A DNA stretch of 64,000 nt, taken from Octopus sinensis (taxonomy: Eukaryota). Positions within the stretch are counted from its first letter, which is position 1; every line of letters begins with the position of its first letter. The stretch covers positions 7,874,001 to 7,938,000 of the forward strand of contig NC_043011.1 in NCBI RefSeq assembly GCF_006345805.1, written 5' to 3'. The notes beneath the pieces are model-generated. The model made no database searches, was not told the origin of the DNA, and saw only the letters and a list, made by a program, of their open reading frames with translations. Both the position numbers and the translations under genes were made by a program. Shown here in pieces: positions 3,155 to 38,412 of this stretch.

Positions 3155-3298
3155 TACATTATTTACATTTGATGGATATTCGTTCCTCGTCTTGTTTGTT
3201 GTTAACACAATGTTTCGGCTGATATACCCTCAAGCTTTCATCAGATGTCTTGGGGAAATTTCAAACCTGGGTTCTCATTCCAAAGGTATTTTTTGATG

Positions 3299-3509: not shown

Positions 3510-3680
3510 CGAAAAATACCTTAAGAATGAGAACGCAGATTCGAAATTCCCCAAGACACCTGATGAAGGCTGGAGGGTATATCAGCTGAAACGTTGTGTT
3601 AACAACAAACAAGATGACGACAAATATCTGTCAAATGTAAATAATGTACATAATTCCTCATCTCTTAAATATAGAACTGT
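3155..3680. mobile_element. Palindromic tRNA-headed, hammerhead-bearing non-autonomous element (Penelope-like module), copy 1
   Basis: Inverted arms about 3155-3300 and 3505-3648, (TAT)n/(AAT)n spacers, reversed tRNA-like head 3384-3448, forward B-box remnant 3455-3477, one-sided 3' tail 3649-3680. Confidence 0.75.
3555..3600 (+). ncRNA. Minimal type I hammerhead ribozyme motif (no stem III loop, palindromic ACGU)
   Basis: gacac CTGATGA a ggctg gagggtatat cagct GAAA cg tt gtgtt. Stem I gacac/gtgtt, stem II ggctg/cagct. Related copies: 3204-3250(-), 4726-4771(-), 7628-7673(+). Confidence 0.75.
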
Positions 3681-6800: not shown

Positions 6801-7526
6801 GCATCACCTTTACCTTTGTAGCAGTTGACTAGTATGCTGCTACACCAGTCCTTGGGTATGACTCCTTCGTGTATCACCTGATTAACTATATGGGTGACTA
6901 GGCTATAGCCGACACTACCAGATATTTTGAGCATCTCAGCAGTGATTCCTGATGGGCCTTGGACTTTCCCTGTCTTCATGCTTCTAATTGCCTTAACTAC
7001 TACTTTCTTTATTCAGCAACCTTTCATAGTGGTGTTTCCAAGCCTCTCTCTTTGCATCCTCATTTAGCACAAGTGAGCCATGATACATGCGAACACATTT
7101 CTCTCCTACCACATCATGATTCTCTCTCACACACTGTCTTGCAACACGAAATACCTCAAGTCTTTGGTCCTCACGGCACAGAACATTGGCAAATTTTTTC
7201 TTTTCTGCTTCCCCTCTGGTTAAATAGACCTGTCTCCTAGCTTCTCTTTTGGTAGTCTGATACAATTCCCTGCTACCCCCATTTTTCCAGTTCTTCCAAG
7301 CCTGTCTCTTTTCTCTAATAGCCCTGTCTACAACATTGTTCCACCACCACGTTATTTTGGGTCGAGAGGGGACTTTGCACCAGCCACAGATCTGGTCAGT
7401 GGCTCTCAGCAGGTTGTCCCTTAGAAACCGCCAGTTGTCTTCTACCCCATGTGAAGCTATATCCCGTTCTACTTCGTTAAAGGCTTCAAGTAATATGTAA
7501 TAATAATAATAATAATGATGATGATG

Positions 7527-13600: not shown

Positions 13601-16600
13601 TCTGCATGCTTTAGCCTTGTTACTAAGACAACAGTCTGGATACTTATAGATCAGACCTTGTAAATATATATATGTGTGTGTGTGTTGTGTGTGTGTGTGT
13701 GTAATAATATCTAATATCAAAGATCCTAACCTCTCCATCTAGAGTAAGAACCCAGTCCTGTAACAGCTTGGGGCTCAAAGCCCATAGCTTTTTAGAACCT
13801 TGCCAAAAAGCATACATATTTCTTTACTACCCACAAGGGGCTAAACACACGGATTAAGTCGATTATATAGACCCCAGTGCGTAACTGGTACTTATTTAAT
13901 CAACTGCGAAAGGATGAAAGGCAAAGTCGACCTCGGCGGAATTTGAACTCAGAATGTAGCAGCAGACGAAATACCGCTAAGCATTTCGCCCGGCGTGCTA
14001 ACGTTTCTGCCAGCTCGCCGTCTTAAAGCATACAGATATGAATATGTTCAAAGAACATTTAGACAAATTTTTTATCTGATAAAGCAGATGAACCTACATC
14101 ATAACAAGAAGCACAAAGAAGGACAGCTTTGTCCAACTCACTGCTTTACCAGACTGAGTTTTGAGATGACCGAGAAGTGAATATAAAATGCACAAGCATG
14201 AGCATAAATGGTGGTGCACCAGCATGGCCACAACCTCTAACTGAAGCCAATGAGGCCCAGGCATGGCTGTGTGGTAAGAAACCTACTTCCTAGCCACATG
14301 GTTCTGAGTTCAATCTTCTACTATAGCCTCAGGCCAACCAAATCCTTGTGTGTGGATTTGGTAGGTGGAAACTGAAAGGAATCTGTTGCGTGTGTGTATG
14401 TATGTTCCCCATGACCTCTTGACAACTGGTGTTGGTGTGTTTACATCCCTGAAATATAGCAGTTCAGCAAAAGCAGCCTATAGGGTAAGTACTAGGCTTA
14501 AAGAAATAAGTCCTGGGTTTGTCTAAAAATTCTTCGAGCCTATGCCCCAGCATGGCCGTTCTCTAATGACCAACACAAAGAAAAGATGCATCTTCTCTCT
14601 ATATATAAACGGCAGTTTGTCTGTGTGTCTGTCACGTTGTACCCTCACCCTGACCACGGCTTTCAACCGATTCTGATGAAACTTGACACACACATAGCCC
14701 AATGTCATAATTCAAAACTAACGCAGCGAAAATTTTGAAAAGTTCCCCCAATTCTGAAAAATATCGATAAATTTGACATGGGGTCGAGAATCAGAAACAC
14801 AAACCACAGACTGTCTAGGGGACGCAACTCGACCCTTTTAACTCTCAAAAAAAATTTACCATCATTTTTTTTCCATTTTTTTGCTATTTTTTAGCTATAA
14901 CTCTCTAAAAATGCTTTATAGTTATTTCCCTTACAAACCCGGGCAACGCCGGGCGATACTGCTAGTAATAGATAAATGCAATGTATTTTACAGTCTTTTA
15001 CCAAGACGGATCCTTCTTGACTTTGAATACTGGCTGGAGCAGTTCAATGAACACGCAGGGTCACCGTGTTCTCACTCAAGAAGCCATAATTGTTACCACC
15101 CATGGTAAGTGGATCTTTTTATTGTTGTTGTTGTTGTTGTTGTTGCAATGATGACCTACAGGTGGGTCACAGCCAGCTGCAATGGGTGTGGATGTCTGGG
15201 GATTGTGATGTGTGTAACGAGGGAAAACTTGGGATCGAGGATAATGCTGAGGTCAGTTTTGTGTGGTGCGTAAAACGTGGGGCTTAGCTGTGTGTGGTGT
15301 GTGCAATACCTAGCTTTGTGTATAATATGATACTTAACTATGTTGTTTGATTGTATGACTTGTTTTATTATACACTGCCTGGTTGTATGATGTAACTGCT
15401 TGTGGACAAATTATTGTCTGATTGTATGATAAAACAGATTGTGGATGGATTATTGTCTAATTGTATGATAAAACAGATTGTGGATGGATTATTGTCTGAT
15501 ATGAATATACTGCCAATGTATTGTATGTTGCTTGTGTGTGTTATATATTGTTTGATGATTGTATGATGTAATAGATTGGACAAATTATTGTCTGATTGTA
15601 TGATATAAATATTCTGTCAATATAGGCGCAGGAGCAGCTGTGTGGTAAGTAGCTTGCTTACCAACCACATAGTTCCGGGTTCAGTCCCACTGCGTGGCGC
15701 CTTGGGCAAGTGTCTTCTACTATAGCCTCGGGCCAACCAAAGCCATGTGAGTGGATTTGGTAGACGGAAACTGGAAGAAGCCTTCCCTTCCAGACCTAGA
15801 GTTACGTGGTGGTGGAATAGTACAGTAGACAAAGCCATTAGAGCAAAGAAACAGGCCTGGAAAACTTGGAGGGGTGGGGGTAACAGGGAACTGTACCAGG
15901 TAGCCAGAAGGAAGGTTGGGTGGCAGGTATACATAGCTAAGGGTGAAGCAGAAAAGAAGACGTTTGTCAATGTCCAGCAACGTGGGGATCAAAGAACTGA
16001 GGTATTTTGGATTGCAAGACAGTGTGTGAAAGAAAATTGTGATGTCACAGGAGGGAAATGGGTCCGCATGGATGATGGTGCACTTGCTTTCAATGTTTCT
16101 GAAAAGAAAAAGGCTTGGAGAAGCCATTATGAGAGACTGCTGAATGTGGAGAATGAATGGGAGAAGGAGAGCCTGCCAAATGTTGACCCAGTAGAGGGAC
16201 CAGCTATCCGAATAGACAGCTCCCCAGTAGTTAAGGCAATTAAGGGTATGAAACCAGGAAAAGCCCCCGGCCCATCGGGAATCACTGCTGAGATGCTTAA
16301 AACAGCTGGTTGTGTGGGCTATGGCCTAGTTACCCACATTGTAAACCAGGTAGTTCATAATGGAGTCATACCCAATGACTGGCGTAGCAGCACCATAGTC
16401 AACTGCTACAAGGATAAAGGTGATGCTCTAGATAGAAACAACTACAGGGGTATTAAACTGGTGGATCAGGTGATGAAGGTCACAAAGAGGGTCATAGCCC
16501 ATCTCATCAGGGAGAGAGTTTGCTTAGATGAGATGCAGTTCAGTTTTGTGCCAGGTAGAAGCACCACTGATGCTATATTCCTGGTCCGACAACTGCAGGA

Positions 16601-19600
16601 GAAATACCTAGCTAAAGATAAACCCCTCTACATAGCTTTCGTGGACTTGGAGAAAGCCTTTGACAGGGTCCCCCGATCCCTTATCTGGTGGGCGATGCGG
16701 AAACTGGAGATTGATGAATGGTTAATAAGGGCTGTACAGGCCCTATACTGAGAGGCTGTCAGCAAGGTTAGGATTGGCAATGAGTATAGTGAAGAATTCC
16801 GGGTAGAAGTAGGGGTCCACCAAGGTTCAGCCCTCAGTCCCCTTTTATTCATCATAGTCCTCCAGGCAATAACAGAGGGATTCAAGATGGGTTGCCCCTG
16901 GGAGCTCCTCTATGCTGATGACCTGGCCCTCATAGCAGAATCACTACCGGAACTAGAAAAGAAATTTCTGGTGTGGAAGCAAGGTTTAGAATCAAAGGGC
17001 CTTAGAATAAATGTAGCAAAGACCAACTTGATAGTAAGCAGAAAGGTGAACTCATCACACACACCCTCGGGCAGGTGGCCCTGCTCGATCTGTAGGAAAG
17101 GTGCAGGTAGAAACTCCATAAGATGCACCCATAAGAAGCATCAGATGTGGTGTGCAAGAGAGACGTTTGTGCTGGTATGGTCATGTACTGCGGATGGATG
17201 AGGAGAGATGTGTGAAGAAGTGCCACTCCCAAACAGTTGAAGGTATCAGGAGGAGAGTTAGACCCAGGAAGACATGGGATGAGGTAGTCAAGCATGACTT
17301 TCGAACGTTGGGCCTCACAGAGACAATGATGAAAGACGGAGATCTCTGGAGATATGCTGTGACTGCAAAGATCCTGGCCAGCGCTACCTTGACTGGTTTC
17401 TGTACCGGTGGCACATGACCTGCTGTGCTTGCGGCGACCTGTTGAGTCAAGTACATCAACATCAAAATTAATATCAAATGGAAATAGTAATTGTGATACC
17501 TGTGCTGGTGGCACGTATAAAGCACCATCCGAACGTGTCCGATGCCTGCGCGGCCTTGACTGGCTTCTGTGCCAGTGGCACGTAAAAATCACCAACCGAT
17601 CATGGCCGCTGCCAGCCTCCCCTGGCACCTGTGCCAGTGGCATGTAAAAAGCACCCACTACACTCATGGAGTGGTTGGCGTTAGGAAGGGCATCCAGCTG
17701 TAGAAACACTGCCAGATCAGACCCCAGTCGAACCATCCAACCCGTGCTAACATGGAAAACGGAGGTTAAACGATGATGATGATGATATATATATATTCGG
17801 TGTTTCTCTCCCACCATTGCTTGAGAATTGATGTTCGTGTGTTTACGTCCTTGTAACTTATCGGTTCAGCAAAATAGACTGATAGAATAAGTACTAGGCT
17901 TACAAAGAATAAGTCCTGGGCTCAATTTGTTCGAGTAAAAGTGGTGCTCCAGCATGACCACAGTCAAATGACTGAAACAAATAAAAGAATTCTGTCAATC
18001 TATTGTATGTTGTTTGATTGTATAACTTGATGTGTTAGATATTGTTTGATGGTTGTATGATGTAAAACACTGGTCAAATTATTGTCTGATTGTATGATAG
18101 AAATATACTGTTGATGTATATTATATTCGTTTCCTTTATAATATATCTTCTTATATTTTCTTTCCCACCAAATGCTGTGTCCATCCTTAACAGAAATTGG
18201 TAAGTTAGCATTGTCTTAATCTTTATATTTTTGCATCCCACAACACAAATACTGAATAATGTGGTGCTCCGGCATGGCCATGGAAGTTAAAACAAACTAA
18301 ATACCTGTTTGTTTACTACCCACAAGGGGCTAAACACAGAGAGGACAAACAAGGACAAACGGATTAAGTCGATTATATCGACTCCAGTGCGTAACTGGTA
18401 CTTATTTAATCGACGCCGAAAGGATGAAAGGCAAAGTCGACCTCGGCGGAATTTGAACTCAGAACGTAGCGGCAGACGGAAATACCTCTAAGCATTTCGC
18501 CTGGCATGCTAACGTTTCTGCCAGCTCGCCACCTTCTAAAACAAACTAAATACCGCCACCACCACCAAACTGTGTTTTTTATATGGTTTAGTTACTCATT
18601 ATTCAGGTAGTGATTGGTCATCACATGTCTAAGCGTCAAGTACACAGACAGAAGCACAACTGACTTCTTTGACAAGAAGCTTGCTTCTCAACCATATGGT
18701 TTTCGGTTCAGTCCTGCTGTGCAGCACTCCTAATGCCAACCACTCCAAGAGTGTAATGGGTACTTTTACATGCCAATGGCACGGGTGCCATTTGCATGAC
18801 AACAGGGTGTGTTTAAGTGCCACCGACACAAGTGCCAGTTTGTGCGACACCGGTATCTGTCACAACTGCAATTCTGCTCAGTTTGATGGGTCTTCTTTTA
18901 AAGCACGACATAATGCCAAAGGTCTCGGTCATTGCCTCCATGGGGCCCAACACTCGAAAGGAACACAGCTGCCTTGCCTCCATGCATGTATGCATGCATC
19001 TTTGTGTTTGTTCCCTCCAACTCCCATGCCACTTGACAACTGGTGTTGGTTTGTTTATATCCTTGTAACTTAGCAGTTTGGCAAAAGCAACTAGTAGAAT
19101 AAATACCAGACTTTAAAAAAAAAAAAACCCAAAAATCAAGTAATGACGGGGTTGATTTGTTTGAGTAAACCTTTTCAAGGCAGTGCTCCAGCATGGCCAC
19201 AGCCCAGCGACTGAAACAACCTGAAGCTAAAAGACAAAAAATTTAAATATCAGGGATCAATGAGTTGCTAAGTGATTTTGGGTTCAGACCAGATTTTTTT
19301 GTTTTTTTCTTTTTGTTGTTGAAGGGGTTAGTGTGTCCTTATTTCATTGGTTTTTTTTTTACATCAGGCCATAACTGGGGTAGTGAGCATGACCCTGGCG
19401 AGGGCATCTGTTCCCCTTCATCATTTGACAATGGAAAATATGTCATGTACCCTTATGCTGTCTCAGGGTATGAATTAAATAACTATGTGAGTATTTTTGT
19501 TTCCATGCTTTTGGGTTTTTTTTTTATTTATGTTTTTTTTTTAATATCTTTTATATATTGTTCTAAAATCAAAATCAAGATCGAAATCAAAATGGAAATT

Positions 19601-20425: not shown

Positions 20426-23400
20426 TCCACATGTATATATATAGGCACAGGAGTGGCTATGTGGTAAGTAGCTGGCTTACCAACCACATGGTCCTGGGTT
20501 CAGTCCCACTGCATGGTACCTTGGGTGAGTGTCTTCTATTATAGCCTTGGGTCAACCAAAGCTATGTGAGTGGATTTGGTAGACAGAAACTGGAAGAAGC
20601 CCGTCATGTTTATATATATATTATATGTATTTCATATCTTTTGTTTCCTACATATGTTTCACCATTGTGGTTATTTGTATGCTCTGCATCAGATGTTTTT
20701 AGTGCAGTTGGTCACTGAACCATAACAGCAGGAATCAAGATCTTACTAGAAATGATTAGAGAAGATACCGGCATAAAACTCTGATTCTGAAACCAAAGTC
20801 TTGATGGGGAACAAGGACAGTTGGAAATAGAGAGTGAAGGATGTCTCCAACTGTTTTGCATATGGAGGACTGGTGGTGACGATACACATAAAGTGTATGA
20901 GCAGGAGTGGGAGAATATGTGTGGGTTCAAGCCTTGCTGTCTTCATATTTCATGTTGATTGCTAATAAACATCAGCATCATATAAACAGTGTTCAGCATT
21001 TGCAATCTGCCATGAAAACATGTCTGGCCATTGTGCTGTTTCTGTTCGAGGATTGAAGAGAAATAGCAATTCCTTTCTTAGAAACAGATTATGTAGGGTT
21101 GGTGACAGCAAGAGCGTCTGGCCATAGAGAATCTGCCTCAACAGTTTTTGTCTGATCCATGCAAGCATAGAAAAGTATGCATTAAGACAATGATGACAAT
21201 GATGATGAGAATGTGCTAAACTGGTTTATTTATTTATTTTCTTTTTCCAGAAATTTTCACCTTGCAGTAGGAAATTTATAAGCAAAGTATTGTTAGCAAA
21301 GGCCGCAACTTGTTTCTCAGGTATGATCAGTTGGTCAGTTTTTTTTTCTTTTTCCACTTCCTATTTTGTTGTGTTCACTATGTTTTCTATGCTATATATA
21401 TATGTCTTGTGAAGACCCGTTGAGACAAGTGAAAATCAAATCAAATCAAATCAAAATCAAAATCAAACCAAATCAAATCAGATATCAGAAAGCAGAACCA
21501 AAATCGAAGTCGATCAACATCAATGGAAATTGCAGCTGTGGTTAAGCGAACCATCCGATCGTAGCCGTTGCCAGCGCCGCCCCGACTGGCCTCCGTGCCG
21601 GTGGCACATAAAAGCACCATACGTTCGTGTCCGTTGCCAGCCTCGCCTGGCCCCGTGCCGGTGGCATGTTAAAGCATCGTCCGTTCATGGCCGTTTGCCA
21701 GCTCCGTCTGGCACCTGTGCGGGTGGCACGTAAAAAGCACCCACTACACTCACGGAGTGGTTGGCGTTAGGAAGGGCATCCAGCCGTAGAAACACTGCCA
21801 GATCAGACTTGGCCTGATGCAGCCTTCTGGCTTCACAGACCCCAGTTGAACCGTCCAACCCATGCTAGCATGGAAAGTGGACGCTAAATGATGATGATGA
21901 TGATATATAATTTTTTTTTTTTTTTACAGAGATGTACTTGCATAGCGTGTGACTTGATCTGAGATCATCTGCTGGAACCAAAACAATTGCAGCGTGGAAG
22001 GTGTTTATAAGCCATTTAAGAAACACACAAAAGCCTTTCGATTCAATCCAACATTTAAATTTAATTTGCCAAAATATTTTCGTCGCTTTGAGACCGCGAC
22101 CTGTTCACTGACAAAATTCCCTGCTGCATCTTTGTTTTGTCAGTGAACAGGTCGTGGTCTCAAAGCGACGAAAATATTTTGGTAAATTAAATTTAAATGT
22201 TGGAGTGAATCGAAAGGCTTTTGTGTGTTTCTTAAATGGCTTATAAACACCTTCCACGCTGCAATTGTTTTTTTTTTTTTTTTGTAATGAGATAAAAAAC
22301 TAAGGCTGTGTAGATTTTAGAACATTTATAGATAGAAGGTCTTACAGCTATTTCCAGGACATTTATTATATCCCTTCATCGGAGACAGTGTGAGACGATG
22401 GTTCAGAAATAGTTATTCTAGATATGATATAAAGTAGAGTGTGAGGTGAAGGAAATAAAAGAAAATGGATGTGAGATATGCAGGGATATTGCAGATCCAT
22501 TTTTTTATGCAGAATGGTATACATATAAGATTCCAATACCTTATGAGTAAAATCCAATAGTCATTCCAAGTATAGAGTTTATACACAGTGTTATTGAATT
22601 AAGGGTTTTATTTAAAGTAACTTAAAATATATATTTATATATATATTTGCAAAATGAATTAAAGTTTTAGCTTAAAATTATAATGTACGAGGGACGTTCA
22701 ATAAGTAATGCTCCTGACCCACTTGCAGTTGTTTGATCTAGCTGAAATTTTGCATGTGCAATTATTTATATCTCTATAGATTAAGTGGCAAATTACAGCT
22801 CTGATCTAATTGTGGTTTATGATTTACAGGTGTTTGAACTAAGTCAAGTGTGAAATGGAGCCTGTTGAGTGGCGAGCAGTGATCCGGTTTTTGTATTTGA
22901 AAGGACGCACACCACGGGAGACTTTTGATGAAATGAAAGTAACTTATGGTGATGATGCCCCATCATATGACCTTGTAAAACGCTGGCATCGTGAATTCAA
23001 ATATGGTTGGAACTCTGTGGAAACAGCTCCCAAATCTGGTCCCCCCCCCCCTTCTGCCATTGATGAGGCATCTGTCTGTCAAGTTGAGTCTACCATTTTG
23101 TAAGATCGACGCATAACGATTCGCCAAATAGCCCATGAGGTCAAGATTAGTACCGGGTCTGTGGAAACTATCATTCATGACCATTTGCATATGCAAAAGG
23201 TGTCTGCCAGATGGATTCCCAGGTTGTTCACACCTTTTCAGAAGCAAGAACGCGTCGAGGGCTCGAGGATGAATTTGGAGATGTGCCAAGAAGATGAGTC
23301 AAAGTTTTTCAAAAGACTGATTGCACAGGATGAAACCTGGGTCCATCACGATGATCCAGAGACCAAAGCCCAGTCAATGCAGTGGAAGCACCATGACTCA

Positions 23401-26400
23401 CCTCCTCCAAAGAAGGCAAGGGTGCAGCCCTCTGCTGGCAAGGTCATGCTCACAGTCTTCTGGGACCAGGACGGAGTAGTGATGACAGATTTCCTGGCAA
23501 AGGGTACCACAATTACAGGAGCCTATTATGCTTCACTTTTGAGGAAATTAAGAGAAGCTATCAAAATCAAGAGGCGGGGCAAGATCAGCAAAGGCATCCT
23601 CCTCTTGCAGGACAACGCTCCGGTCCACAACTCGCGTGTCATAAGATCAGAAGCACCGGCGTGTGGCTATGAACTCCTCCCCCATCCCCCCTACTCTCCT
23701 GACCTTGCACCCTCTGATTTTCACCTCTTCCCAGCCATGAAGTTGTATTTGAAAGGAAAGCGTTTCCCATATGATGCAGCCTTGATTTCTGAAGTCACGT
23801 CGTGGTTGGAAGACCAAGCTGGGGTCTTCTACAAAAACGGTCTCCAGAGCTGCATCAAACAATGCAAGAAATGCGTAACTCTGGGTGGTTCCTATGTAGA
23901 AAAAGACTAATAACTGTGCCAAGTTTCGTTGCTCTACTGTTATGGGAAGTGGGTCAAAGACATTACTTATTGAACGCCCCTCGTATATCTCTTTAAAAGT
24001 GAAGACGTATGGCTCAGTGGTTAGAGTGTCGAACTTATGATCGTAAGGTTTGTGTTCAATTCCCAGACTGGGCTGCATGTTGTATTCTTGAGCAAGACAC
24101 TTTATTTCACGCTGCTCCTGTTTGCTCATCTGTAGAAATGAGTTGCGACGTCACAGGTGCCAAGCCGTATTGGCCCCTTTGCCTTTCCCTTGGATAACAT
24201 CGGTGGCATGGAGAGGGGAGGCCGGTATGCATGGGCGACTGCTGGTCTTCCGTAAACAAACTTGCCCGGACTTTTGCCTCAGAGGGTAACTTTCCAGGTG
24301 CAATCACATGGTCAGTCATGACCAAAGGAAGTCTCCGATTAATTCATACTAGAATATTAGGATAAAATCGCGTTAAGAATTTTTATCAGGTATTCAACAT
24401 GTAATAAAAACTTAAAGGTAATTTATAAGTTAAATTAATAATTATATGTATATGCATATAATTATATTAAGGGGGCAATGGCAAAAAAAAAAGACCTCTC
24501 TCTAACAGGCTTGAAAATGTCGAGGCATTCAGATACTACAATAAAACTCCAAAAATATACACAGATTGTACGTCAACATCATCTTCATCATCGTATAACG
24601 TCCGCTTTCCATGCTAGCATGGGTTGGACGATTTTGACTGAGAGCTGGCGAACCAGATGGCTGCACCAGGCTCCAATCTTGATCTGGCAGAGTTTCTACA
24701 GCTGGATGCTCTTCCTAACGCCAATCACTGCAAGAGTTTAGTGGGTGCTTTTTACATGCCACCGGCATGGGGGCCAGTCAGGCAGTACTGGCAAAGACCT
24801 CGCTCGAATCTTTTTACACATGCCACCAGCATAGGTGCCAGTAAGGCGATGTTGGTAACGATCACACTCAAATGGTGCCCTTTTACGTGACACTGGCACC
24901 GAAGCCAATTGGCTGCTCTGGCAACAATCAGGCTTGGACGGTGCTCTTGGCACCCTACTAGCATGGGGCTTGAGTGCCAGTAAGGCTACAACATCAAAAT
25001 AAATATCAAATGGAAATTGTAGTTGTGATACCTGTGCTGGTGGCACATAAAAAGCACCATCCGAATGTGGCCGATGCCAGCGCTGCCTTGACTGGTTTCT
25101 GTGCCGGTGGCACATAAAAACTACCAACTGATCATGGCCGCTGCCAGCCTCCCCTGGCACGTAAAAAGCACCCACTACACTCACGGAGTGGTTGGCATTA
25201 GGAAGGGCATCCAGCTGTAGAAACACTGCCAGATCAGACTGCAGCCTGGTGCAGCCTCCTGGCTTCCCAGACCCGAGTCAAACCGTCAAACCTGTGCTAG
25301 CACAGAAAACAGATGTTAAACGATGATGATGATGATGTAGGTGAGAAGAAAATAGAGGAAAATAACAAAAAGAAGTGTGTCTTTTGTGCCAGTAAGCCAT
25401 TATTTAATTAGTAAATAAAGGTGAGTCTCACTCTCACCTTTATATACTAATTAAATAATGGCTTACTGGCATAAAAGACACACTTTGTTTCCTTATATTT
25501 CCTCCATTTTCTTCTCTTAGAGACCCTTAATTATAACTTTATATATATATACATATATATACTGTTCCGTGATAGAACGGTCAATGAAAAATGTACTCCA
25601 TCTTGTGAGAAATAAATGTTATTTGTTTAAAGGTCACAATACATGTCTTTAAGTGCTCCTAATATTATCATTTGCTGAGAAATATCTCAGACAGATTCAT
25701 CAGGCACAAACCACATACCAAACCGAAGTAAAAAAAAAAAAAAAGTGAATCTGAGAGGAAATGTGGAAGAACTGAGAAGGCAGAACGTAGAAAATGCAGA
25801 AGGTTGAAATTACGGAAAACCAGGAAGCATCAGCAGTACCATCATCATCACCATCAACAGCAGCACCATCAGGAGGTGCAATGGCCCAATGGTTAGGGCA
25901 GCGGACTCGTGGTCGGAGGATCGCGGTTTCGATTCCCAGACCGGGCATTGTGTGTGTTTATTGAGCGAAAACACCTAAAGCTCCACGAGGCTCCAGCAGG
26001 GGGTGGTGGCAACCCCTGTTGTACTCTTTCGCTCCAACTTTCTCTCACTCTTTCTTCCTATTCCTTGTCCCCGACTTCCAACGCAACCGCTTAACCTGGA
26101 TGCGCATTCATCCATCTGTTGATGCTCTTGGTGTCGGGGGTTGACCTGCTTTCTCTTCTGCAGGTCTTATGAATAGCAAAGGACCACATTTCAGACTTCT
26201 CGCACTAATGGGACGAAGACCGCTTCGCTCAACAAACAAACAAACAAACAAACAGCATCATCATGACTATTGCTACCACCACAACCATTTCCACCACTCC
26301 CATCATCACCACTACCACCATCACCATCATATAAGTGACACTTCCTTTATCATTTCTCTTTGACAGATGGGAGACAGTTTAACTTCTGTGGAAACGGTAA

Positions 26401-29276
26401 AGTTGAAAAAAGCAGAGGTGAAGAATGCGATGTCGGCTTCTTGGCCAACAGTGCCTTCAACCATTGTTGCACTGATAAATGTGTGCTTAGCGCTGGTGCC
26501 GAGTGCAGGTATTGTATTATTCCGCCGTCTTAGAGTCAGCCTTTGGTTTGCTGGGGGGGAGGGGTGGCCTTGTTGTCATCTTTTACTTGTTTCAGTCATT
26601 GGTCTGTGGCCATGCTGGGGCACCACCTTGAATTGGTCCCCAGTATTTGTTTAATATCTGTTTAATATTTGTTTAATATCCTGTCAGTCACATTTAATAA
26701 ACTGCTAAGTTACAGGGACATAAACAAACCAACACCTGTTGTCAAGTAGTGGAGAGCAGACAAACACCAAGCTTCATACAAATCATCATCATCACTACCA
26801 TCATTTAACATCCGTTGTCCATGCTGGCATGGGTTGGACAGTTTCACTGGGTTGGCAAGCTGGAGGGCTGCACCAGACTCCTCAACTGGCCAGCTGTCAA
26901 ACCTATTTCTTTACTATCCCCAAGGGGCTAAACACAGAAAGGACAAACAAGGACAGACAAACGGATTAAGTCAATTATATCGACCCCAGTACGTAACTGG
27001 TACTTATTTCATCGACCCTGAAAGGATGAAAGGCAAAGTCGACCTCAGCGGAATTTGAACTCAGAACGTAGCGGAAGACGAAATACCGCAAAGCATTTCG
27101 CCCAGTGTGCTAACGTTTCTGCCAGCTCACCGCCATTTTTTAAAAAAAGACCATAGTAGAAGACACTTGCCCAAGGTGCCACGCAGTGGGACTGAACCCA
27201 GAACCATGTGGTTCGTAAACAAGCTACTTACCACACAGCCACTCCTACGTCTCTAACCATCCAACCCATGCCAGCATGGAAAACGGATGTTGAATGATGA
27301 TGATGATTGGACTGTATCAAATGTATGAAACATAGTAATTTCACAGACCATGCTGCAGCACTAGGATGTTTTGCACAGAGGCGGTACCATGGCCAATGAG
27401 GTGTACCCGAGGCGTGGTTATTGCTAGTTGAAAACCATTTACTTACGGAAAGGCAACATTTCATTCTGTTGATATTCTGAGAGTCACAAATCTAAGTAGA
27501 GATTTCAAACTTAAAATCTTCAAAGCCACAGTCGAACCAGTTCTACTATATGGCTCAGAAACCTGGATGTTATCAAAGAAGCTTGAGAGGCGGTTGGATG
27601 GAACTTACACTCGCCTCCTTATGAAAGCTCAAAATCTCTCGTGGAAGTGTCATCCAACCAAAGTACAAATATATGGGAAACTACTACCTGTATCATCTCT
27701 TGTGAAAGGTAGAAGAGTCCAGTTTGCTGGACATTGTTGTAGAGCTGAAAAAGAGGTAATTTCTACTCTTCTCCTCTGGAAGCCATCTGCTCGCGATACC
27801 AGAGGGCGCACACTCTCCTACCCTGATGTAATCTCCAGAGATACAGGCATCTAGCAACAGGATCTCCGTAATGCCATGATGGACCGTGAGGTCTGGCGTA
27901 ACATAGTAAATTCCATTGTCTCGACCATGGTTGAACAATGATGATGATGATGCATCGATCTCAGTGTTGCAAATCTTCCTAGGTGTCCTTCATTTGCCAT
28001 TTTCAATTCTGTCAGAAGCAAATCAATTCTATACAGGTTTCCCCAGAACATTATTACAACTGACCTTCCTAGTTTATGTTACTTACTGCAAAATGTTCTC
28101 CACTGACTATTTTATAGAGAAATTCAGAAATTTGACTGTTATTTCTAGCAGGCTGACTAACCACATTAGCACTTCCTTGTTATCCCTCTTAATCATATAT
28201 GTGTTGTTGTTACCTGATTGATTACATTTATTTTACTTATTACCTTAATGCACCAAATTAATTTTTGCTCCCCGTTTATTTCTTTCAGCCCTGTCAACCA
28301 TGAATGTTGCACCCTGGGCTGCAAAATTGCCCCTAAAGGGGTATTATGTCGGTCAGTTGTAGGTGATGCCTCTGATTGTCTCAAGAACTCCATCTGTACA
28401 TATCCTTTATTTCTCATGTTTACTCCTTTGGAGTTTATGGGTTTGCCTCTTTCGGGAGCAAAGGGCCAAATATTTTGCAGGAACCCTGCTGGGATTTTTT
28501 TTGTTCGATTCTGAATTTATTGTTTTTTTTTCTTTTACTTGTTTCAGTCATTTGACTGCGGCCATGCTGGAGCACCGCCTTTAGTCGAGCAACTCAACCC
28601 CGGGACTTATTCTTTGTAAGCCCAGTACTTATTCTATCGGTCTCTTTTGCCAAACCGCTAAGTAACGGGGACATAAACACACCAGCATCGGTTGTCAAGC
28701 AATGCTAGGGGGACAAACACAGACACACAAACACACACACATACATATACATACATATATACGACGGGCTTCTTTCAGTTTCCGTCTACCAAATCCACTC
28801 ACAAGGCTTTGGTCGGCCCAAGGCTATAGTAGAAGACACTTGCCCAAGGTGTCACGCAGTGGGACTGAACCCGGAACCATGTGATTGGTAAGCAAGCTAC
28901 TTACCACACAGCCACTCCTGCGCCTTCGATTCTGAATTTATTGTTTTTTGTTTGTCTTTTTATTTTTATATTATTATCTGTATCTTTGTCTCTACATTTA
29001 CAGTACATATATATGTGTACATATATCTGTATATATTTATATATACAGATATAGAAATACCTTCTTTCCCCACAGATTAATAACAGGTCAGTTATATATA
29101 TATATATGTTCAACTAATTTTATTGTATTTTGTAGTAGGTTTTTTAAATGCTTATATTATTTTATTATTATTAGTTTATTGGATATAACTTTTTATGTGT
29201 ATTCCATACAATAAGGTTATCCTGAAATAGGAGTCAATGTTCTATAGTTAAAATCCCAAATTTGTTATAATATATC

Positions 29277-29321
<45 letters not shown>

Positions 29322-30924
29322 TGTATATGTATGCGTTTATGCATATATAAAATAAAAGAAAAAGAGCAGATAGGTTAATATAATGCATGTTCGATCTTAA
29401 CTGTTGCCCTTGAATACTGTGTCAAACTTATGTATGTATGTGTGTGTGTGTGTGTGTGTAATAGTACATATGTATCTAGAAGTGGATAAGCATATATGAG
29501 TATATAATTTAAGATTATACGTATATTTATGAGTGTGTCTATATGATTGTGTGTACTTGTGTATATGTATATGGTTATATGTGCACAGTTGCACCTCAAC
29601 GTTGTATCCATTCACCGTTAGACGATGATGAGAGGGACAAACACACACCCACACATATATATGTGTGTGTGCGTCTATACTAACATATATGTGTGTATGT
29701 ATACAACCTTCCACAAAGTAAGTCATGTACACAACTTGGACGGACACATGCCAGTACACGGACATAGGTTTATATACACATACACATGTACACACACACA
29801 CAGACGCGTCTGCCCATTCTCCTAGATACTCACATACGTAGCACATAAGTACAAACATACATACATGCGTATGGGCATACACACGTACATACGCACGTAC
29901 ATGTACACACATACACACACATACATACGCATATACATACATACGCACATGCGTACGTACGTGCATACACACATACATACATACATACACACATACATAC
30001 GTATATATATATAACTTGAACTAACTAGATGTAATGGAGAAAAAAAAGATAAGTAATAATAAAACAAAAGGTTTTGATATATTAAATTTCTAAATCTCTC
30101 ATAGAGATATGTACGGTGGTGGGGCAATAGAATGGTTGTATACTGTCAATCTAACGTGACAGTAGGGGATTACACCACCGCTGTTTAGCCCTAGGAAGCA
30201 TCGACGCTTCCTGATGGCTTCGACACATTTTTCCTGTGTCCTTATATATTTACGAAGGGGAGACAAACACCCCCAGCAGCCAGGCCTGCATCTAGAGACA
30301 CGCGTGTTTCAGGATCATTGTCCTTCATCGGTCTAGAGTAGCAGACGCCCGTCAGCCGTTGATATCTGCCTCGACTCGCGAATGTATATATCTAATTTTC
30401 AGTGAAGTTTATTCACCGATTACCAAAATCAGAAATATTAAATTTCTAAATCTCTCATAGCGATATGTACGGTGGTGGGGCGATAGAGATATAGAGATAA
30501 GTGGCTGATAATAGGTTTTAGAGTTTTGTCGGTGGGGTTAAAGGTCATAAAACACTTCCTAGTTTCGGCGGGGGGGGGAGGTTGAAATTTGATATTGCTG
30601 TGATGAGTGGTCAGTCTACACCTATCCACCACTACAAGTTTATAGCTTTAAGTTTATAGTGTGTGTGTGTGTGTGTGCGTGCATATACACACATACATAC
30701 ATACACACATGCGTACGTACGTACATACTTACATACATGCATGCATGCATACATACATACACACATACATACGTACATATATATAACGAACAAACTGTTA
30801 CTTTCTCAGATGCAGCACGGATTTTTGTCAGTGAAGAGGTCGCGGTCTTAAAGCGACGAAAATATTTTGAGAAATTAAACTTAAATGTTGAAGTGAATCG
30901 AACGGCTTTTGTGTGTATATATAT

Positions 30925-30977
<53 letters not shown>

Positions 30978-33669
30978 ATGTGTATAAACACACACAGATA
31001 TAACTGTATATATGTGTGTGTGTGCATGTATAGATATTTATATATGTGTGTGTACATATGTATATATGTTCGTTTCTATGTGTGTGTGTGTGTGTGTGTT
31101 ATATAAATATAAAATACAAAAATGGGACAAGAACGCAAAACATCCTAACTGTATCACCTAACTGTCTGGATGTTTTGCGTTCTTGTCCCATTTTTGTATT
31201 TTTTATATATAAAAATATAGTGGCATATGTACACTTTGGTCTCTGATATATATATATATCATCATCATCATCGTTTAACGTCCGCTTTCCATGCTAGCAT
31301 GGGTTGGACGGTTCAACTGGGGTCTGGGAAGCCCGAAGGCTGCACCAGGCCAGTCAGATCTGGCAGTGTTTCTACAGCTGGATGCCCTTCCTAACGCCAA
31401 CCACTCCGTGAGTGTAGTGGGTGCTTTTTATGTGCCACCGACACAGGTGCCAGACGAGGCTGGCGAACGGCCACGCTCGGATGGTGTTTTTTACGTGCCA
31501 CCAGCACAGAGGCCAGTCAATGTGGTACTGGCAACAGCCACGTTCGGATGGTTTTCTTATGTGCCACTGGCACTGGTATCACAAAACTACAAATTCCATT
31601 GATGTTCATCGATTTGATTTGATTCTTTGATTTTTGATTTTCACTTGCCTCAACAGTTCTTCACAAGTAGAGTTGTGTGTCCCAAGAAGGAAGGTATGCA
31701 CAGGTGGACTGACTACGTCCCACGTAGGGGCCATGGGTTATGGCCTCACTTGTCCTACCGGGTCTTCTCGCGCACAGCATACTTCCAAAAGTCTCGGTCT
31801 CTGGTCATTTCCTCGGTGAGATCTAAAGAGCGAAGGTCGTTCTTCACCACCTCGTCCCAGGTTTTCCTGGGTCTACCTCTTCCACAGGTTCCCTCAACCG
31901 CTAGGATGTGGCACTTTTACACACAACTATCTTCATCCATTCTTACTATGTGTCCATACCAGCGTAGACGCCTCTCTTGCACACCACATCTGATGCTTCT
32001 TAGGTCCAACTTTTATCTCAAGGCACTTACACTCTGTCGGGTATGAACACTGACATTACACATCCAACGGAGCATACTGGCTTTATTTCTTGCGAGCTTA
32101 CACATATCCTCAGCAGTCACGGCCCATGTTCCACTGCCATGTAGCCTGGCTGTTCGCACACATGCATCATACAGTCTGCCTTTTACTCTGAGCGAGAGGC
32201 CTATTGTCACCAGCAGAGGTAAGAGCTCTCTGAACTTTTCCCAGGCTATTCTTACTCTAGCAGTTACACTTTCGGCACACCCACCCCCACTACTGACTTG
32301 GTCACCTAGGTAACGGAAACTATCAACTATTTCTAGTTTTTCTCCCTGGAAATTGACGGAAGATGGTCTCTGCGCATTTTCTGTGTTTATTGCACCAGAG
32401 CATCTGCCACATACAAAAACCATCTTCCTAGTTAGCCTTCCTTTGACATTGCTGCACTTCTTATGTGTCCATAGCTTACACTTGGTGCATCTTATAGAGT
32501 TCCTACCTACGACTTTTCTACAGATTGAGCAGGGCCATCTACCTGAAGGTGTTTGAGATTTGTCTGCCTTCCTACTTATTAGGACTTTGGTTTTAGCTCG
32601 ATTGACTCTGAGGCCCTTCGATTCTAATCCTTGCTTCCACGCCTGAAACTTCTCCTCGAGTTCTGATAGTGATTCAGCAATTAGAGCAAGGTCATCAGCA
32701 TAGAGGAGCTCCCAGGGGCATCCTGTCTTGAATCCCTCCGTTATTGCCTGGAGGACTATGATAAATAGGTGGGGGCTGAGGACTGAGCCTTGGTGGACCC
32801 CAACCTCCACCCGGAATTCTTCACTGTACTCGTTGCCAACCCTCACCTTACTAACAGCGTCCCTGTACATGGCACGCACAGCTCTCACTAACCATTCATC
32901 TATCCCTAGTTTCCTCATTGGCCACCAGATAAGGGAACAGGGGACCCTGTCAAAGGCTTTCTCCAAGTCAATGAATGCCAGGTACAGAGTTTTATCTTTG
33001 GCTAGGTATTTCTGCAGCTGTCTCACCAGAAATATGGCATCAGTGGTGCTTTTCCCTGGCACAAAACCAAACTACATCCCATCTAGGTTGACTCTCTCTC
33101 TAATCAGTTGGGCTATGACCCTTTCCGTAACCTTCATTACCTGGTCCAACAGCTTGATACCTCTGTAATTACTTGTATCTAGGGCGTCACCTTTACCTTT
33201 GTAGCAGTTGACTATTATGCTACTACACCAGTCATTGGGTATGACTCCTTCGTGTATCACCTGGTTAGCTATACGGGTTACTAGGCTATAGCCGACACTG
33301 CCAGATATTTTGAGCATCTCTGCAGTAATTCCTGATGGGCCTGGGGCCTTCCCTGTCTTCATGCTTCCAATTGCCTTAACTACCATGGAACTGTCAACTC
33401 GGATAGCTGGTCCCTCTATTGGGTCGACATTCGGCAGACTCTCTTTATCGCATTCATTCTCTTTGTTGAGCAACCTTTCATAGTGGCATCTCCAAACCTC
33501 TCTCTTTGCATCCTCATTTAGCGCAAGTGAACCATCATCCATGCGAACACATTTCTCTCCTACCACATCACGATTCTCTCTCACACACTGTCTTGCAACA
33601 CAAAACACCTCAAGTCTTTGGTCCTCACGGCGCAGAACATTGGCAAATTTTTTCTTATCTGCTTCCCCT

Positions 33670-33724
<55 letters not shown>

Positions 33725-36403
33725 CAAATGAGAAAACGGAAAGGATATAAAATCGACAGACGTCAGCCAGTAAAGCTTCAAGTATGTCTATTTATTCAAA
33801 TGTATTGGTTGAATATACACACATTTATGAATGATACAGATTAGTGAGTGGAAAACACTGGTAACTGCATAGACAATGGTGTGAATACAATTTACATATA
33901 TAGAAACAAATGTAGTGATGGAGATAACCTGGAAGATTTTGTTACCTCTTGGCAGAAACGGCCGTAAGGAACTAGTACCTGCACCCCCATTTAGATTTTT
34001 GGCCGATGCCAGCGCCGCCTTGACTGGCTTCCGTGCTGGTGGCATGTTAAAAGCACCAACCGATCGTGGCCGATGCCAGACTCCCCTGGCACCTGTGCCG
34101 GTGGCATGTAAAAAGCACCCACTACACTCGCGGAGTGGTTGGCATTAGGAAGGGCATCCAGCTGTAGAAACACTGCCAGATCAGACTGGAGCCTGGTGCT
34201 ACCCTTGGCTTCCCAGACCCCGGTCGAACCGTCCAACCCATACTAGCACGGAAAACGGATGTTAAACGATGATGATGATGATGATGATGTTTCTATATAT
34301 TTATATGTATTCACACCCTTGTCTATGAAGTTACCAGCTTTTTCCACTCGCTAATCTGTACTACTCATACATACATGTGTTTGTGTATTCATCCACTACA
34401 TTTGAATAAATAGACATACCTGAATTTTTACCGGCTGATGTCTGTCGATTTTTATATCCTCTCTGTTTTCTCATTTGCCGTATAAATCAAGAGTAAATCA
34501 CTGTTTTACCCCCGCCCATATATAATACTCAATTGCGAGATTGCCATGCAATAACGAGCACTTGGCTATGAATAATTGGGTACACTACCAGCAGTATATT
34601 GGATAGGTACTATCCCTTAGTTGGTTTTTCAACCTCTAACTCACACAGAAATATATATATATATATATATATAGGCGCAGGAGTGGCTGTGTGGTAAGTA
34701 GCTTGCTTACCAACCACATGGTTCCGGGTTCAGTCCCACTGCGTGGCATCTTGGGCAAGTGTCTTCTGCTATAGCCCCGGGCCGACCAATGTCTTGTGAG
34801 TGGATTTGGTAGACGGAAACTGTATGTATGTGTGTGTATTTGTCCCCCTAGTATTGCTTGACAACTGATGCTGGTGTGTTTACGTCCCCTTCACTTAGCG
34901 GTTCGGCAAAAGAGGCCGATAGAATAAGTACTGGGCTTACAAAGAATAAGTCCCGGGGTCGATTTGCTCGACTAAAGGCGGTGCTCCAGCATGGCCGCAG
35001 TCAAATGACTGAAACAAGTAAAAGAGAAAAGATATATATATATATATACATATTCGAACTTTGAACCTCAGGGAGGCAATGACTAGTGACCGAGACCTTT
35101 GGTGTTATGCTCTGCTTAAGAGGACCCATCAAGCCAAGTGAATCTGTGCTGGTGGCATGTAAAAAAAAAAAAAAAAAAATCAACCTTTGCACACTGGGCC
35201 TCACTGAGTTCCTTTTGAGCATTGGGCTTGATGGAGGCAAAGTTGCTGCGTTCCTTTCAAGCAGACCTCATGCAGGGGGCCTCCTGAAGGGAAAGTGGCT
35301 GAATTCCTTTCAAGTGTTGGTCCTCACGAAGGCAATGACCAAGGTCTTTGGCATTATGTTGTGCTTGAGAAGAAGACCCCTCAAGCTGAGCAAAATTGCA
35401 GGCCTGGCAGATGCTGGCCTCATGCAAATTGGCACCCATGCCAGTGGCATGTAAACACATCCTGGTGTCATGCAAATGGCACTCGTGCCAGTGGCATGAG
35501 TGGTTGGCATTGGGAAGGGCATCCAATCATAGAAAACCATGCAGAATCAGACTGGGCTCTGGTGTAGCCTTCCAGTGTGCCAGACCAATCACTGCCCGAC
35601 CCATGCCAGCATGGACAACAGATATTAAATGATGATGATGACATACATCTGCGGCAAAATAATGATGCTGTGAGTGGACAAACGAAAGATGGGCATTCAA
35701 CACATTTATTGGGAGTTACGTGTATGGATGAAAACAATTTGATTCAAATTCGTTGGTACTCTGAGAGTTTCGAATGTGATGCTAATCTTTGGCCATTTCA
35801 GATTTAAAATGGCTGAAGATTAGCATCGCACTTAAAACTGTCGGAGTACCAATGGATTTGAATCAAACTCCTTTCATTCATATATGTGTGTGTGTGTGTG
35901 TGTGTAAATGTCGTATGAGAATGAGTGCTCAACAAATATTGGTGGATAAAATTTCTTAATTTTTGTATTAAGGCTACCATTGCTTTCATGTTAAGAAAAA
36001 TATATTAATATCTTATCAGTCTTTCTTGCACATCTCTCTCCCTGATGGCAGTGGTGGTGGTGGTGGTAGTGGTCCACCCTCTCCGTTTATCTACCTCTTA
36101 CCATCCCTCATTCAGTCACCCGTTATATTCAGTGAACTATTTTCTCCCTTCTGGGTGTTTACTATTTTTTTCATCTTTGTAAGCGAAATGAATTTTATTT
36201 CCTTAACATTGTTACTGGAAACAATTACAATTGTCCAACACCTGAGTTTAAAGCAGATTCCACCCCATGTTTGGATGGGTAAGTATTATGGCTCTCTTCC
36301 ATATATAAATGTGTGTGTATGTGTGTGTGTGTGTGCAAGTTTAGTGCAACAAACTGGAGAAATAGTACTCTATACATGTGCAGTTTATTTGTATATATAT
36401 GTA

Positions 36404-36505: not shown

Positions 36506-38412
36506 ATTAGGGAATATTATTCCAAACTTACAGGGAAAAATTCAATTTAGTAATACTAAATCAAATTTCACAATATATAATATATGTTTATAAATTAGAG
36601 AAGAACCAACCTTTTATCAATTCAACAATGAAATATCAATGATATAAATTTACATGTTTTATCGTATATTTAATTTTTTTTCTATATGGTATAATTTAAT
36701 TATATCATTGTTATTTCATTGTTGAATTGATAAAAGGTGGTTCTTCTCTAATTTATATATATATAAAGTTATAAATGATGAGAGAAATAGAATGATGGAA
36801 TTTATTTAGCCATTGGAATTTTTTTATCTCACAACTAGTTTCACAACTTAAAACCTGAAAAGATAATTTATTTTATTCTATTCTACAAGTAAATAACATG
36901 TCTGTATTAATATAAACAACTCAATATATATATATATAATATATATATATATCACCATGACCAACCAGGCTATCAGATGTTGCTGGTCACAATGCGCTTT
37001 GCATTGTTTTAGCTTTCAAATGATGCCACCCCGCTGGCTAAGCAAGCAGGCCAACAGAAGAAAGAGTGAGAGAAAGTTGTGGCGAAAGAGTACAGCTGGG
37101 ATTACCACCACCCCCTGCCAAAGCCTCGTGGAGCTTTAGGTATTTTCGCTCAATAAACACTCACAACGCCCAGTCTGGGAATCGAAACCACAATCCTACG
37201 ACTGCGAGTCCACTGCCCTAACCACTGGGCCATTGTGCCTCCATACATATATATATGTACTTCACTAAATTAAGAGACAGTAATGAGTGAAAATTCTGTA
37301 AATAATAATTTTAAGCTTAATCGTATAAGCATTCCGTGTATATTGGCTAAAGAAAATAGTCCAATATTGGGGCCTATAAGCCCTCAGTGGAGAAAAAAAT
37401 GGGTATTAGTACAGGTGAGAATTGAACCCCATCTTTTATTTTCACTTAAGCTTATAATAACCATTTACAAAATTTTCACTTGTCACCATTTCTTAATTTA
37501 ACACAGACTACGCACGTTTCTTTTGCACAATGCTATGAAATCACAATTCTTAAATTAATGGGGGAAAATTGGTGGGTAAGTTGGTGTAATCAGTCAGCAC
37601 ATTTATCACAAACATAAGAGATGTGGGTTCAATTCCCACATCTACTAATACCCATTTTTATTCCCGTCTTGGGCTTATATGCCCCAATATTAGACTATTT
37701 TTCTGTAGCCAATACAGTGATTGCTTATAAGCTTAGGCTTATAATAATAATAATAATAATAATATGGGAACAAAAGGGTTAAAGTGATCTATATGATTAA
37801 CCTTCTATTAAAAATATGTGTTAAATTATGTTCCAAGCACCAGCTTATAAAGGACAAAATAATATTATTAAGTTCTTCGTTATTTTCAAAATTTTTTGAA
37901 ACAAAGGCTGTGTGTTTCACTAGAAATATGGGAACAAAAGGGTTAAAGTGATCTAATCACAATTATTTCTTTTACAGTGGCAAATGTAAAGACGGGAAAT
38001 GCTTACCCTTCTGTGAAGCTCGCAATGTGAAATCGTGCATCTGTGATAATGGTAAGTCCAAGGCCTTCAGAGTTTCTTTTTTTATATTTAAAGTAGAACG
38101 TCAGCTTACAAATGTCTCTCATCTCAAACAAATCAGTTTGCATGCAATTTTTGAAGCATAAAACATCTTGGGTGATGAATAGTGTCTTGAGTAACAAGTG
38201 CACAAAGTGGCAACAGAGGGTGGCAGCAGTCTGTGGGTATCAGTTGGTGACTGTTGGTTGATGTCTGGATCAGTGCACATCCCTGCTTAAATTTGCTTTG
38301 TCTTCTCTTGAATTTTCTGTGGGACAAAATAGTCTTGATTTATAAATATTTCGGGTGAGAAATGGCCTTCAGGAATGAATAAAATTTGTAAACTAAGAGG
38401 GCTACTGTTCAA

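Follow-up and report, generated by a model that had tools for sequence, protein, structure and literature searches.

Octopus ADAM17 and the probable U12-type AT-AC intron that splits its disintegrin domain

The DNA analysed here (the window) is a 64,000 nt stretch of the Octopus sinensis genome (RefSeq assembly GCF_006345805.1, contig NC_043011.1, positions 7,874,001 to 7,938,000 of the forward strand) that carries an ADAM17-like gene. Octopus coordinates are counted from the first letter of the window. Positions 28400-36215 are very probably a genuine U12-dependent AT-AC intron, which interrupts the disintegrin domain of the octopus ADAM17 orthologue. An intron of the AT-AC minor-spliceosome type had been proposed at this place in an earlier note on the window, and its coordinates and motifs were found to be exact by direct reading. 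From the signals described below, we infer that the junction is used in RNA and that its removal depends on the minor spliceosome.

Splice signals, reading frame and host gene

The intron and the flanking exons are arranged as follows (a slash marks a splice junction, here and below):

28289..28399, plus strand: upstream exon of 111 nt, disintegrin domain of the ADAM17-like gene, preceded by ttctttcag and ending in phase 2
28400..28408, plus strand: U12-type donor ATATCCTTT (AT-AC subtype), agreeing with the consensus at 9/9 positions
28400..36215, plus strand: intron of 7,816 nt with AT...AC termini (direct reading; orthologous U12-type introns)
36199..36207, plus strand: U12 branch-site motif TTCCTTAAC, perfect consensus match
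36214..36215, plus strand: terminal AC (direct reading), with TGGAAAC next
36216..36278, plus strand: downstream exon of 63 nt (T GGA AAC ... GAT GG), beginning TGGAAACAATTAC and followed by a gtaagt donor

The upstream exon ends at 28399 with ...ATCTGTAC (longer context ...CTCCATCTGTAC) and is directly adjoined by ATATCCTTT, a donor that deserves the name "textbook" given to it in the earlier note. The copy of ATATCCTT at 28400 is the only one beside an exon on the plus strand. At the other end, the last base of TTCCTTAAC is separated by 8 nt from the last base of the intron (spacer attgtt, then AC), as had been described, and the presumed branch adenosine (36206) lies 10 nt from the first exon base. 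No polypyrimidine tract was seen by direct reading between the branch motif and the 3' end of the intron. The donors of the other introns of the ADAM17-like gene within the window are all ordinary and GTAAGT-like.

Joined at 28399/36216, the two exons form one open frame in phase 2, in which a Thr codon is split (AC/T). The product reads …DCLKNSIC/TGNNYNCP…, which is the disintegrin sequence of ADAM17 without a gap, and the Pfam Disintegrin match extends over the junction. The earlier statements that the flanking exons are in frame and that the intron lies in the disintegrin domain were thus upheld, the join being ungapped against human ADAM17 and the best matches being ADAM17.

The exons were located by tblastn with a human ADAM17 probe; this probe was used for exon finding only, and the conclusions on the gene rest on retrieved sequences. 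Eleven exons were found in order on the plus strand, from ~9.7 to 49.4 kb. The spliced model (373 residues) had 47 homologues in the protein collection: its top match was 'ADAM 17-like protease [Octopus vulgaris]' (P0001; 95% identity, full coverage), followed by ADAM17 from gastropods, bivalves, annelids, arthropods and vertebrates, and the best named matches were all ADAM17 or ADAM 17-like. The Pfam Disintegrin domain and the ADAM17-specific membrane-proximal domain (ADAM17_MPD) were both matched by the model. Among solved structures, human ADAM17 chains were best (E=6e-30; 7e-07 for ADAM10) and aligned over the junction without a gap (human stretch tCKGVSYCTGNSSECP). The join was likewise ungapped against ten orthologue sequences, with Cys32, Cys38 and Gly40 (alignment numbering) at least 90% conserved. 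The HExxHxxGxxH catalytic motif of the reprolysin-type domain is pieced together from exon B (ending ...ACCACCCATG at 15104), a 6-nt microexon and exon C (from 19368):

18194-18199, plus strand: 6-nt microexon ag/AAATTG/gtaagt, giving the catalytic Glu and the Ile of HEIGH

The HEIGH sequence obtained by microexon splicing agrees with P0001. A 7-nt microexon was also sought and nothing was found; the 6-nt exon is the correct reading. By these comparisons, the host gene is an octopus ADAM17/TACE orthologue.

The frequency of the U12 motifs by itself is at chance level and not significant: ATATCCTT was observed 3 times in the window (2.96 expected) and TCCTTAAC 5 times (2.03 expected). The case was therefore built on placement and orthology, orthology being the stronger argument. 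Homology breaks off at exactly the base where the donor motif begins, and it resumes 8 nt after the branch motif, with the correct phase. What goes beyond chance is this placement where ADAM17 homology stops and resumes, together with the return of U12-type signals at this codon in six further protostome genomes. The remaining motif copies were checked and no second U12 intron was found in the 64-kb window. The second ATATCCTT, at 19057, was rejected as a U12 donor and is located within a short interspersed element (SINE); the TCCTTAAC at 18184-18191 was rejected as a U12 branch site because it lies 2 nt before the AG of the microexon, which is too close.

Removal of the intron would start with the U11/U12 di-snRNP (small nuclear ribonucleoprotein) cooperatively recognising ATATCCTTT at the 5' end and TTCCTTAAC as branch site; U4atac/U6atac.U5 would join next. 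The 3' AC would be chosen via its short distance (~10 nt) from the branch adenosine and not via a polypyrimidine tract, and the downstream exon of 63 nt, which has a strong U2-type donor (GG/GTAAGT), would probably help by exon definition. As in other animal U12 AT-AC introns, the 5' end is /ATATCCTT, TCCTTAAC lies near a 3' end that lacks a pyrimidine tract, the terminal dinucleotide is AC, and the intron is the single one of its kind in an otherwise U2-type gene. This class was defined in animals in human NOP2/P120 intron F, CMP and SCN4A/SCN5A (Hall and Padgett, 1994; Tarn and Steitz, 1996, as cited in PMC10639083). The octopus ADAM17 intron is an ordinary member of it: the signals are no different, whereas transposons bring the octopus intron to 7.8 kb, and the single mammalian gene examined carries a U2-type intron at this place. 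In a literature search, no paper was found with both 'ADAM17' and 'U12-type'. This specific intron may already be present within genome-wide minor-intron catalogues; Octopus sinensis was among the species used for conservation analysis in the survey PMC10639083.

Orthologous introns and their history

The same ADAM17 codon was read in genomic loci of Caerostris, Candidula, Potamilus, Tegillarca, Capitella, Aplysia, Dimorphilus and Galeopterus, with the following results:

Caerostris extrusa (spider): 5' TGCAA/ATATCCTTTTATTTCTCAT, 3' TTTTCCTTAACATTTAATAC/TGGT; AT-AC, signals AA/ATATCCTTTT…TTCCTTAAC +9 nt…AC
Candidula unifasciata (land snail): 5' TGCAA/ATATCCTTTCC, 3' CCCTTAATTATTTGAC/TGGT; AT-AC, signals AA/ATATCCTTTC…CCCTTAAT +8 nt…AC
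Potamilus streckersoni (mussel): 5' TGCGA/GTATCCTTTC, 3' ACCTTAACTGCTGTTAG/TGGT; U12-type GT-AG, signals GA/GTATCCTTTC…ACCTTAAC +9 nt…AG, donor class GTATCCT
Tegillarca granosa (clam): 5' TGCGA/GTATCCTTTT, 3' ACCTTAACTAGAAACCAG/TGGT; U12-type GT-AG, signals GA/GTATCCTTTT…ACCTTAAC +10 nt…AG, donor class GTATCCT
Capitella teleta (annelid): 5' TGCTC/GTATCCTGC, 3' TTCCTCAATAGTGATTTCAG/TGGT; U12-type GT-AG, 77-nt intron, signals TC/GTATCCTGC…TTCCTCAAT +11 nt…AG, donor class GTATCCT
Aplysia californica: 5' exon within an assembly gap; 3' side only, U12 branch site TCCTTGAC +12 nt, then AG
Dimorphilus gyrociliatus: no intron at the position (deleted)
Galeopterus (mammal; locus L003, ~21880-21890 and ~26125-26135): 5' ACAG/GTATGTGCC, 3' TTTATTTCCAG/GTAAT (TTTCCAG/GTAAT); U2-type, phase 1, 2 nt downstream

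U12-type signals were found at the same phase-2 position in every intron-retaining protostome examined. Conservation of the position in ADAM17 orthologues, which the earlier note had put forward as a check on the intron, was thus observed across molluscs, an annelid and a spider. The intron is ancient, and by this comparison it has been U12-type at least since the protostome ancestor. Its later history comprises switching between the AT-AC and GT-AG subtypes and deletion in Dimorphilus, while the mammal has a U2-type intron at a distance of 2 nt. The octopus intron has swollen to its present length through SINE and LINE (long interspersed element) insertions.

Subtype switching and U12-to-U2 conversion were described by Burge, Padgett and Sharp (1998; as surveyed in PMC10639083), and the mosaic at the octopus locus fits that account: the intron is AT-AC in octopus, Candidula and the spider and U12-type GT-AG in two bivalves and Capitella, is lost in Dimorphilus, and has a U2-type counterpart in the mammal. 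Unlike the identical-site conversion of the U12-to-U2 model, the U2 intron of mammalian ADAM17 is offset by 2 nt and in phase 1. Because the mammalian intron is 2 nt downstream and in phase 1 instead of phase 2, conversion at an identical site is not demonstrated here; the mammalian intron may have arisen either by U12-to-U2 conversion with a 2-nt slide or by loss and regain at a CAG/GT proto-splice site. The position thus marks an ancient U12 intron and offers a small, well-resolved case on loss, conversion and sliding. In a pan-eukaryotic survey, minor introns were relatively enriched in molluscs and arachnids (PMC10639083).

The earlier note had also suggested that the intron is a second post-transcriptional control point in the gene that carries the catalytic microexon. 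Were minor splicing the rate-limiting step in octopus, production of ADAM17 would hinge on it. Such a control point is hypothetical, and vertebrate ADAM17 works with a U2-type intron here, as read in the one mammal examined.

The start of the octopus intron (28400-28418, ATATCCTTTATTTCTCAT) is near-identical to that of the Caerostris intron (locus L004, ~10205-10224, ATATCCTTTTATTTCTCAT) past the consensus. The likeness is absent from the other species examined and may be due to chance in T-rich sequence.

A conflicting gene model and competing splice sites

The O. vulgaris model P0001 has a different junction, formed by two sites that lie within the exon and the intron described above:

28359..28364, plus strand: competing or cryptic U2-type donor GTT/GTAGGT; it precedes the U12 donor by 41 nt and is the one that the O. 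vulgaris model implies
36182..36183, plus strand: competing or cryptic U2-type acceptor AG (tttcatctttgtaAG/CGA); it precedes the U12 3' site by 32 nt and is likewise implied by the O. vulgaris model

Splicing of this pair (28359-36183) changes the product by a net -9 nt and keeps the frame, the junction being GGTCAGTT/CGAAATGA versus ATCTGTAC/TGGAAAC for the U12 pair.

Several observations weigh against an AT-AC intron. P0001 is the sole octopus protein on record and implies a GT-AG pair; its source annotation was built with Iso-Seq and RNA-seq input (PMC10700109), and the model does include the 6-nt microexon. The Pfam Disintegrin scores of the U12 and U2 products are 47.2 and 48.4 bits, respectively, and do not discriminate between them. 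No octopus transcript-derived sequence across the junction was found in the protein collection, which was searched with a 58-residue peptide (no match; the index is sparse for short queries) and with the 373-residue model. Finally, the spacing between the branch site and the 3' end is short, at the low end of the usual range (roughly 8-20 nt). For telling the two products apart, the generic Pfam score was set aside in favour of the orthologue alignment, which does distinguish them. In that alignment, P0001 is alone among eleven sequences in lacking Cys32 and Cys38, and its replacement peptide has no counterpart in the others.

Both pairs might be used, the ratio of full-length to disintegrin-defective isoforms being set by minor-spliceosome activity. 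When minor splicing becomes limiting, cryptic U2 sites close to U12 introns are known to come into use, and U2-type and U12-type sites can compete, for example in the Drosophila prospero twintron. The octopus locus resembles the prospero twintron in that the U2-type and U12-type pairs overlap and are both in frame, and the second pair is present in the O. vulgaris model. Unlike the prospero case, the octopus U2 pair is not conserved in other species, is known here from sequence and one gene model, and encodes an alternative peptide conserved in no other species aligned. In-frame GT/AG pairs are also expected by chance, and a product short of two structural cysteines would more likely be misfolded than functional. 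Use of both pairs is very unlikely, although, given the RNA input to the O. vulgaris annotation and the microexon that it captures, the GT-AG pair might still give a minor or cryptic isoform. If the pair 28359/36183 were really used in octopus, with the level of the minor spliceosome deciding between a functional sheddase and an isoform minus two disintegrin cysteines, a key signalling protease would have a U2/U12 competition switch, and that switch would share its gene with the 6-nt microexon that gives the catalytic Glu; we regard this as improbable.

It is more doubtful still that the intron really removed is the U2-type GT-AG intron 28359-36183 (…CRSV/…), as in the O. vulgaris annotation, with the U12-like motifs there by coincidence. 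In favour of this reading, the junction is precisely that of P0001, the source pipeline was fed with long-read and short-read RNA data as mentioned above, the product is in frame, and the acceptor at 36183 is preceded by a reasonable pyrimidine tract (ctatttttttcatctttgtaAG). The donor GTT/GTAGGT, however, is weak, and the 41 nt that GT-AG splicing makes intronic encode the conserved DC…C motif. In the product, a conserved block is replaced by a lineage-specific peptide, and two cysteines found in all other orthologues examined are lost. As to the differences between P0001 and the O. sinensis model, 12 extra ones all fall inside the 13-residue junction block, while 5/359 positions differ elsewhere (98.6% identity). 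Chance alone yields many GT/AG pairs here that keep the frame and meet no stop (16/44 within ±60 nt), and none of them restores the conserved C-x5-C-x-G-x4-C pattern. At the AT-AC position, U12 signals recur in the six other species, and no U2 alternative is conserved among them.

In the Candidula model (P0006; locus L007, 27071-29011), another GT-AG pair has been imposed on the AT-AC intron, so that KYPFLH stands in place of NGVS. In the Tegillarca model (P0022; locus L006, 22982-25030), the disintegrin exons are skipped, although they are in the genome with a U12-type GT-AG intron. Gene models were thus wrong at this intron in 3/7 protostome models examined (O. vulgaris, Candidula and Tegillarca), which agrees with the earlier remark that such introns are easily mis-annotated. 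Because the Candidula and Tegillarca models are also wrong, the error appears to be systematic for this intron. EVidenceModeler is not known to build consensus models with introns other than GT/GC-AG. The O. vulgaris annotation was produced with EVidenceModeler and then updated with PASA (PMC10700109). The O. vulgaris model carries little weight as evidence, because it comes from an EVidenceModeler-based pipeline and deletes two otherwise universal cysteines, and its GT-AG junction is most likely a pipeline artefact. The earlier note had named the use of nearby GT-AG sites as a sign against its reading: such a pair does occur in the O. vulgaris model, but its product lacks two conserved cysteines, so the sign is weak.

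That the locus is a decayed pseudogene or a mis-assembly, with an apparent intron that is never spliced, can be set aside almost entirely: the intron is long and repeat-rich, and a U4-like retrocopy and many transposon fragments lie around the exons, but eleven exons and the 6-nt microexon span 40 kb in intact, ordered and open form and have good splice sites, and the product has all ADAM17 domains and the near-identity to the O. vulgaris protein given above.

Mis-annotated AT-AC introns are a known boundary problem, which intronIC was made to correct (PMC10639083), and the same pattern was seen here, GT/GC-AG-bound pipelines shifting boundaries to in-frame sites or skipping exons. The minor 5' site is sought by intronIC within a ~10-bp window, and corrections are made only for non-canonical annotated boundaries (PMC10639083). 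Unlike the cases that intronIC corrects, the O. vulgaris boundaries are shifted by 41 nt and 32 nt, beyond that window; with shifts of this size and canonical boundaries, automatic correction would probably miss the case. Such annotation errors, with cysteines lost or the disintegrin domain missing, would mislead structural and evolutionary analyses of invertebrate ADAM17.

Repeat content of the intron and neighbouring elements

By self-comparison, 60% of the intron has repeat matches at other places in the 64-kb window. The following elements were distinguished:

28532-28924 (within 28504..28952), minus strand: SINE of family A, ~400 nt, with an A-rich tail on the minus strand
31240..33681, minus strand: 5'-truncated non-LTR (long terminal repeat) retrotransposon (LINE), 89% identical to window positions 4899-7000
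31258-31570, 33997-34310 and 35498-35641, no strand assigned: family-B fragments of ~300 nt, identical to the LINE 3' end (about 29 copies in the window)
33715..34487, no strand assigned: inverted-repeat element (foldback-like or like a miniature inverted-repeat transposable element, MITE), with arms 33715-33908 and 34288-34487 of ~190 nt, about 85-88% complementary
34637..35062, plus strand: second family-A SINE, inverted relative to the first copy
35285..35651, no strand assigned: further interspersed-repeat fragments, including family B at 35498-35641 (self-comparison)

Dinucleotide microsatellites are also present, and no identified repeat reaches into the initial ~100 nt or the final ~560 nt of the intron. 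The first SINE lies between two copies of a 28-nt direct repeat, TTCGATTCTGAATTTATTGTTTTTT… (28504-28531 and 28925-28952, 96% identical), a target-site duplication; it begins ~105 nt past the 5' splice site. Family A, with about 19 copies or fragments in the window, has the characteristics of a SINE. The open reading frame (ORF) of the LINE (32013-33062, minus strand) comprises 349 codons with an RVT_1 match (E=1.5e-24) and a Cys-rich PHD-like finger, and the 3' end of the element near 31258 has a (GATG)n-like tail; no endonuclease was found in the 5'-truncated copy within the intron. RTE LINEs were reported in Octopus (PMC9115989), and by analogy a place in the RTE clade is plausible for the intronic LINE. 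The arms of the inverted-repeat element enclose the family-B fragment 33997-34310, and neither a target-site duplication nor a family was established for it. The earlier picture of an intron densely filled with transposons, SINEs among them, was accurate in substance, with two family-A copies (one with its target-site duplication), a LINE with an RVT_1 ORF and an inverted-repeat element.

The two SINEs form an inverted pair (28526-28925 and 34673-35030; 84.8% over 400 nt, about 5.7 kb apart). Speculatively, they could pair into a long pre-mRNA duplex that loops out ~5.7 kb, serves as an ADAR substrate and brings the splice sites closer.

Two hammerhead motifs that the earlier note had placed in the intron were not recovered. 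There was no Rfam hammerhead among 102 matches at E<=10 in 28300-36300 and none at the gathering score in the whole window, and a CTGANGA…GAAA core scan of the intron returned one loose match (32086-32113, minus strand), which lies inside the LINE ORF. Outside the intron, a 32-nt motif, CTGATGAAGGCTGGAGGGTATATCAGCTGAAA, is repeated at 3213-3244, 3560-3591, 4735-4766 and 7633-7664 and flanks the LINE copy 4899-7000; it has a hammerhead-like core (CUGAUGA–stem–GAAA), and no Rfam hammerhead match was obtained for it at E<=1.

The three-way exon split around the catalytic motif (TTH/EF/GHNWG) was also seen in Capitella (locus L001) and Aplysia (locus L002), and in Dimorphilus (locus L008) it is fused with the downstream exon. 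Capitella has tandem versions of a catalytic-domain exon (…FCLAHLFT…GVLGLAYI…GG(V/I)CSP) at 2149-2292 and 2639-2782 of L001, 350 nt apart and 44% identical at the protein level, which may be mutually exclusive exons or an exon duplicate. In the Aplysia locus, the GHNWGAEHD…YDENNE exon occurs twice (15314-15433 and 17137-17256), with partial copies at 15629-15682 and 17511-17564; this could be either a local duplication or an assembly artefact, the scaffold being gap-rich.

Two further elements were found in other introns of the octopus gene. The intron upstream of exon F contains a full-length U4 small nuclear RNA-like sequence (27367-27502, plus strand; Rfam RF00015, 63.4 bits). Directly after it, with the same orientation, comes the C-terminal portion of an ORF for a non-LTR reverse transcriptase (…DREVWRNIV; 27503-~27940, plus strand). 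Together (27367-~27940), they look like a U4/LINE chimeric retrocopy, analogous to mammalian U6/L1 chimeras. The intron after exon G contains a tRNA-like sequence (37575-37647, plus strand; Rfam tRNA, 47.1 bits; tRNA-Leu CAA by ARAGORN), which may be a pseudo-tRNA or the head of a SINE, since 73 nt is short for a Leu tRNA.

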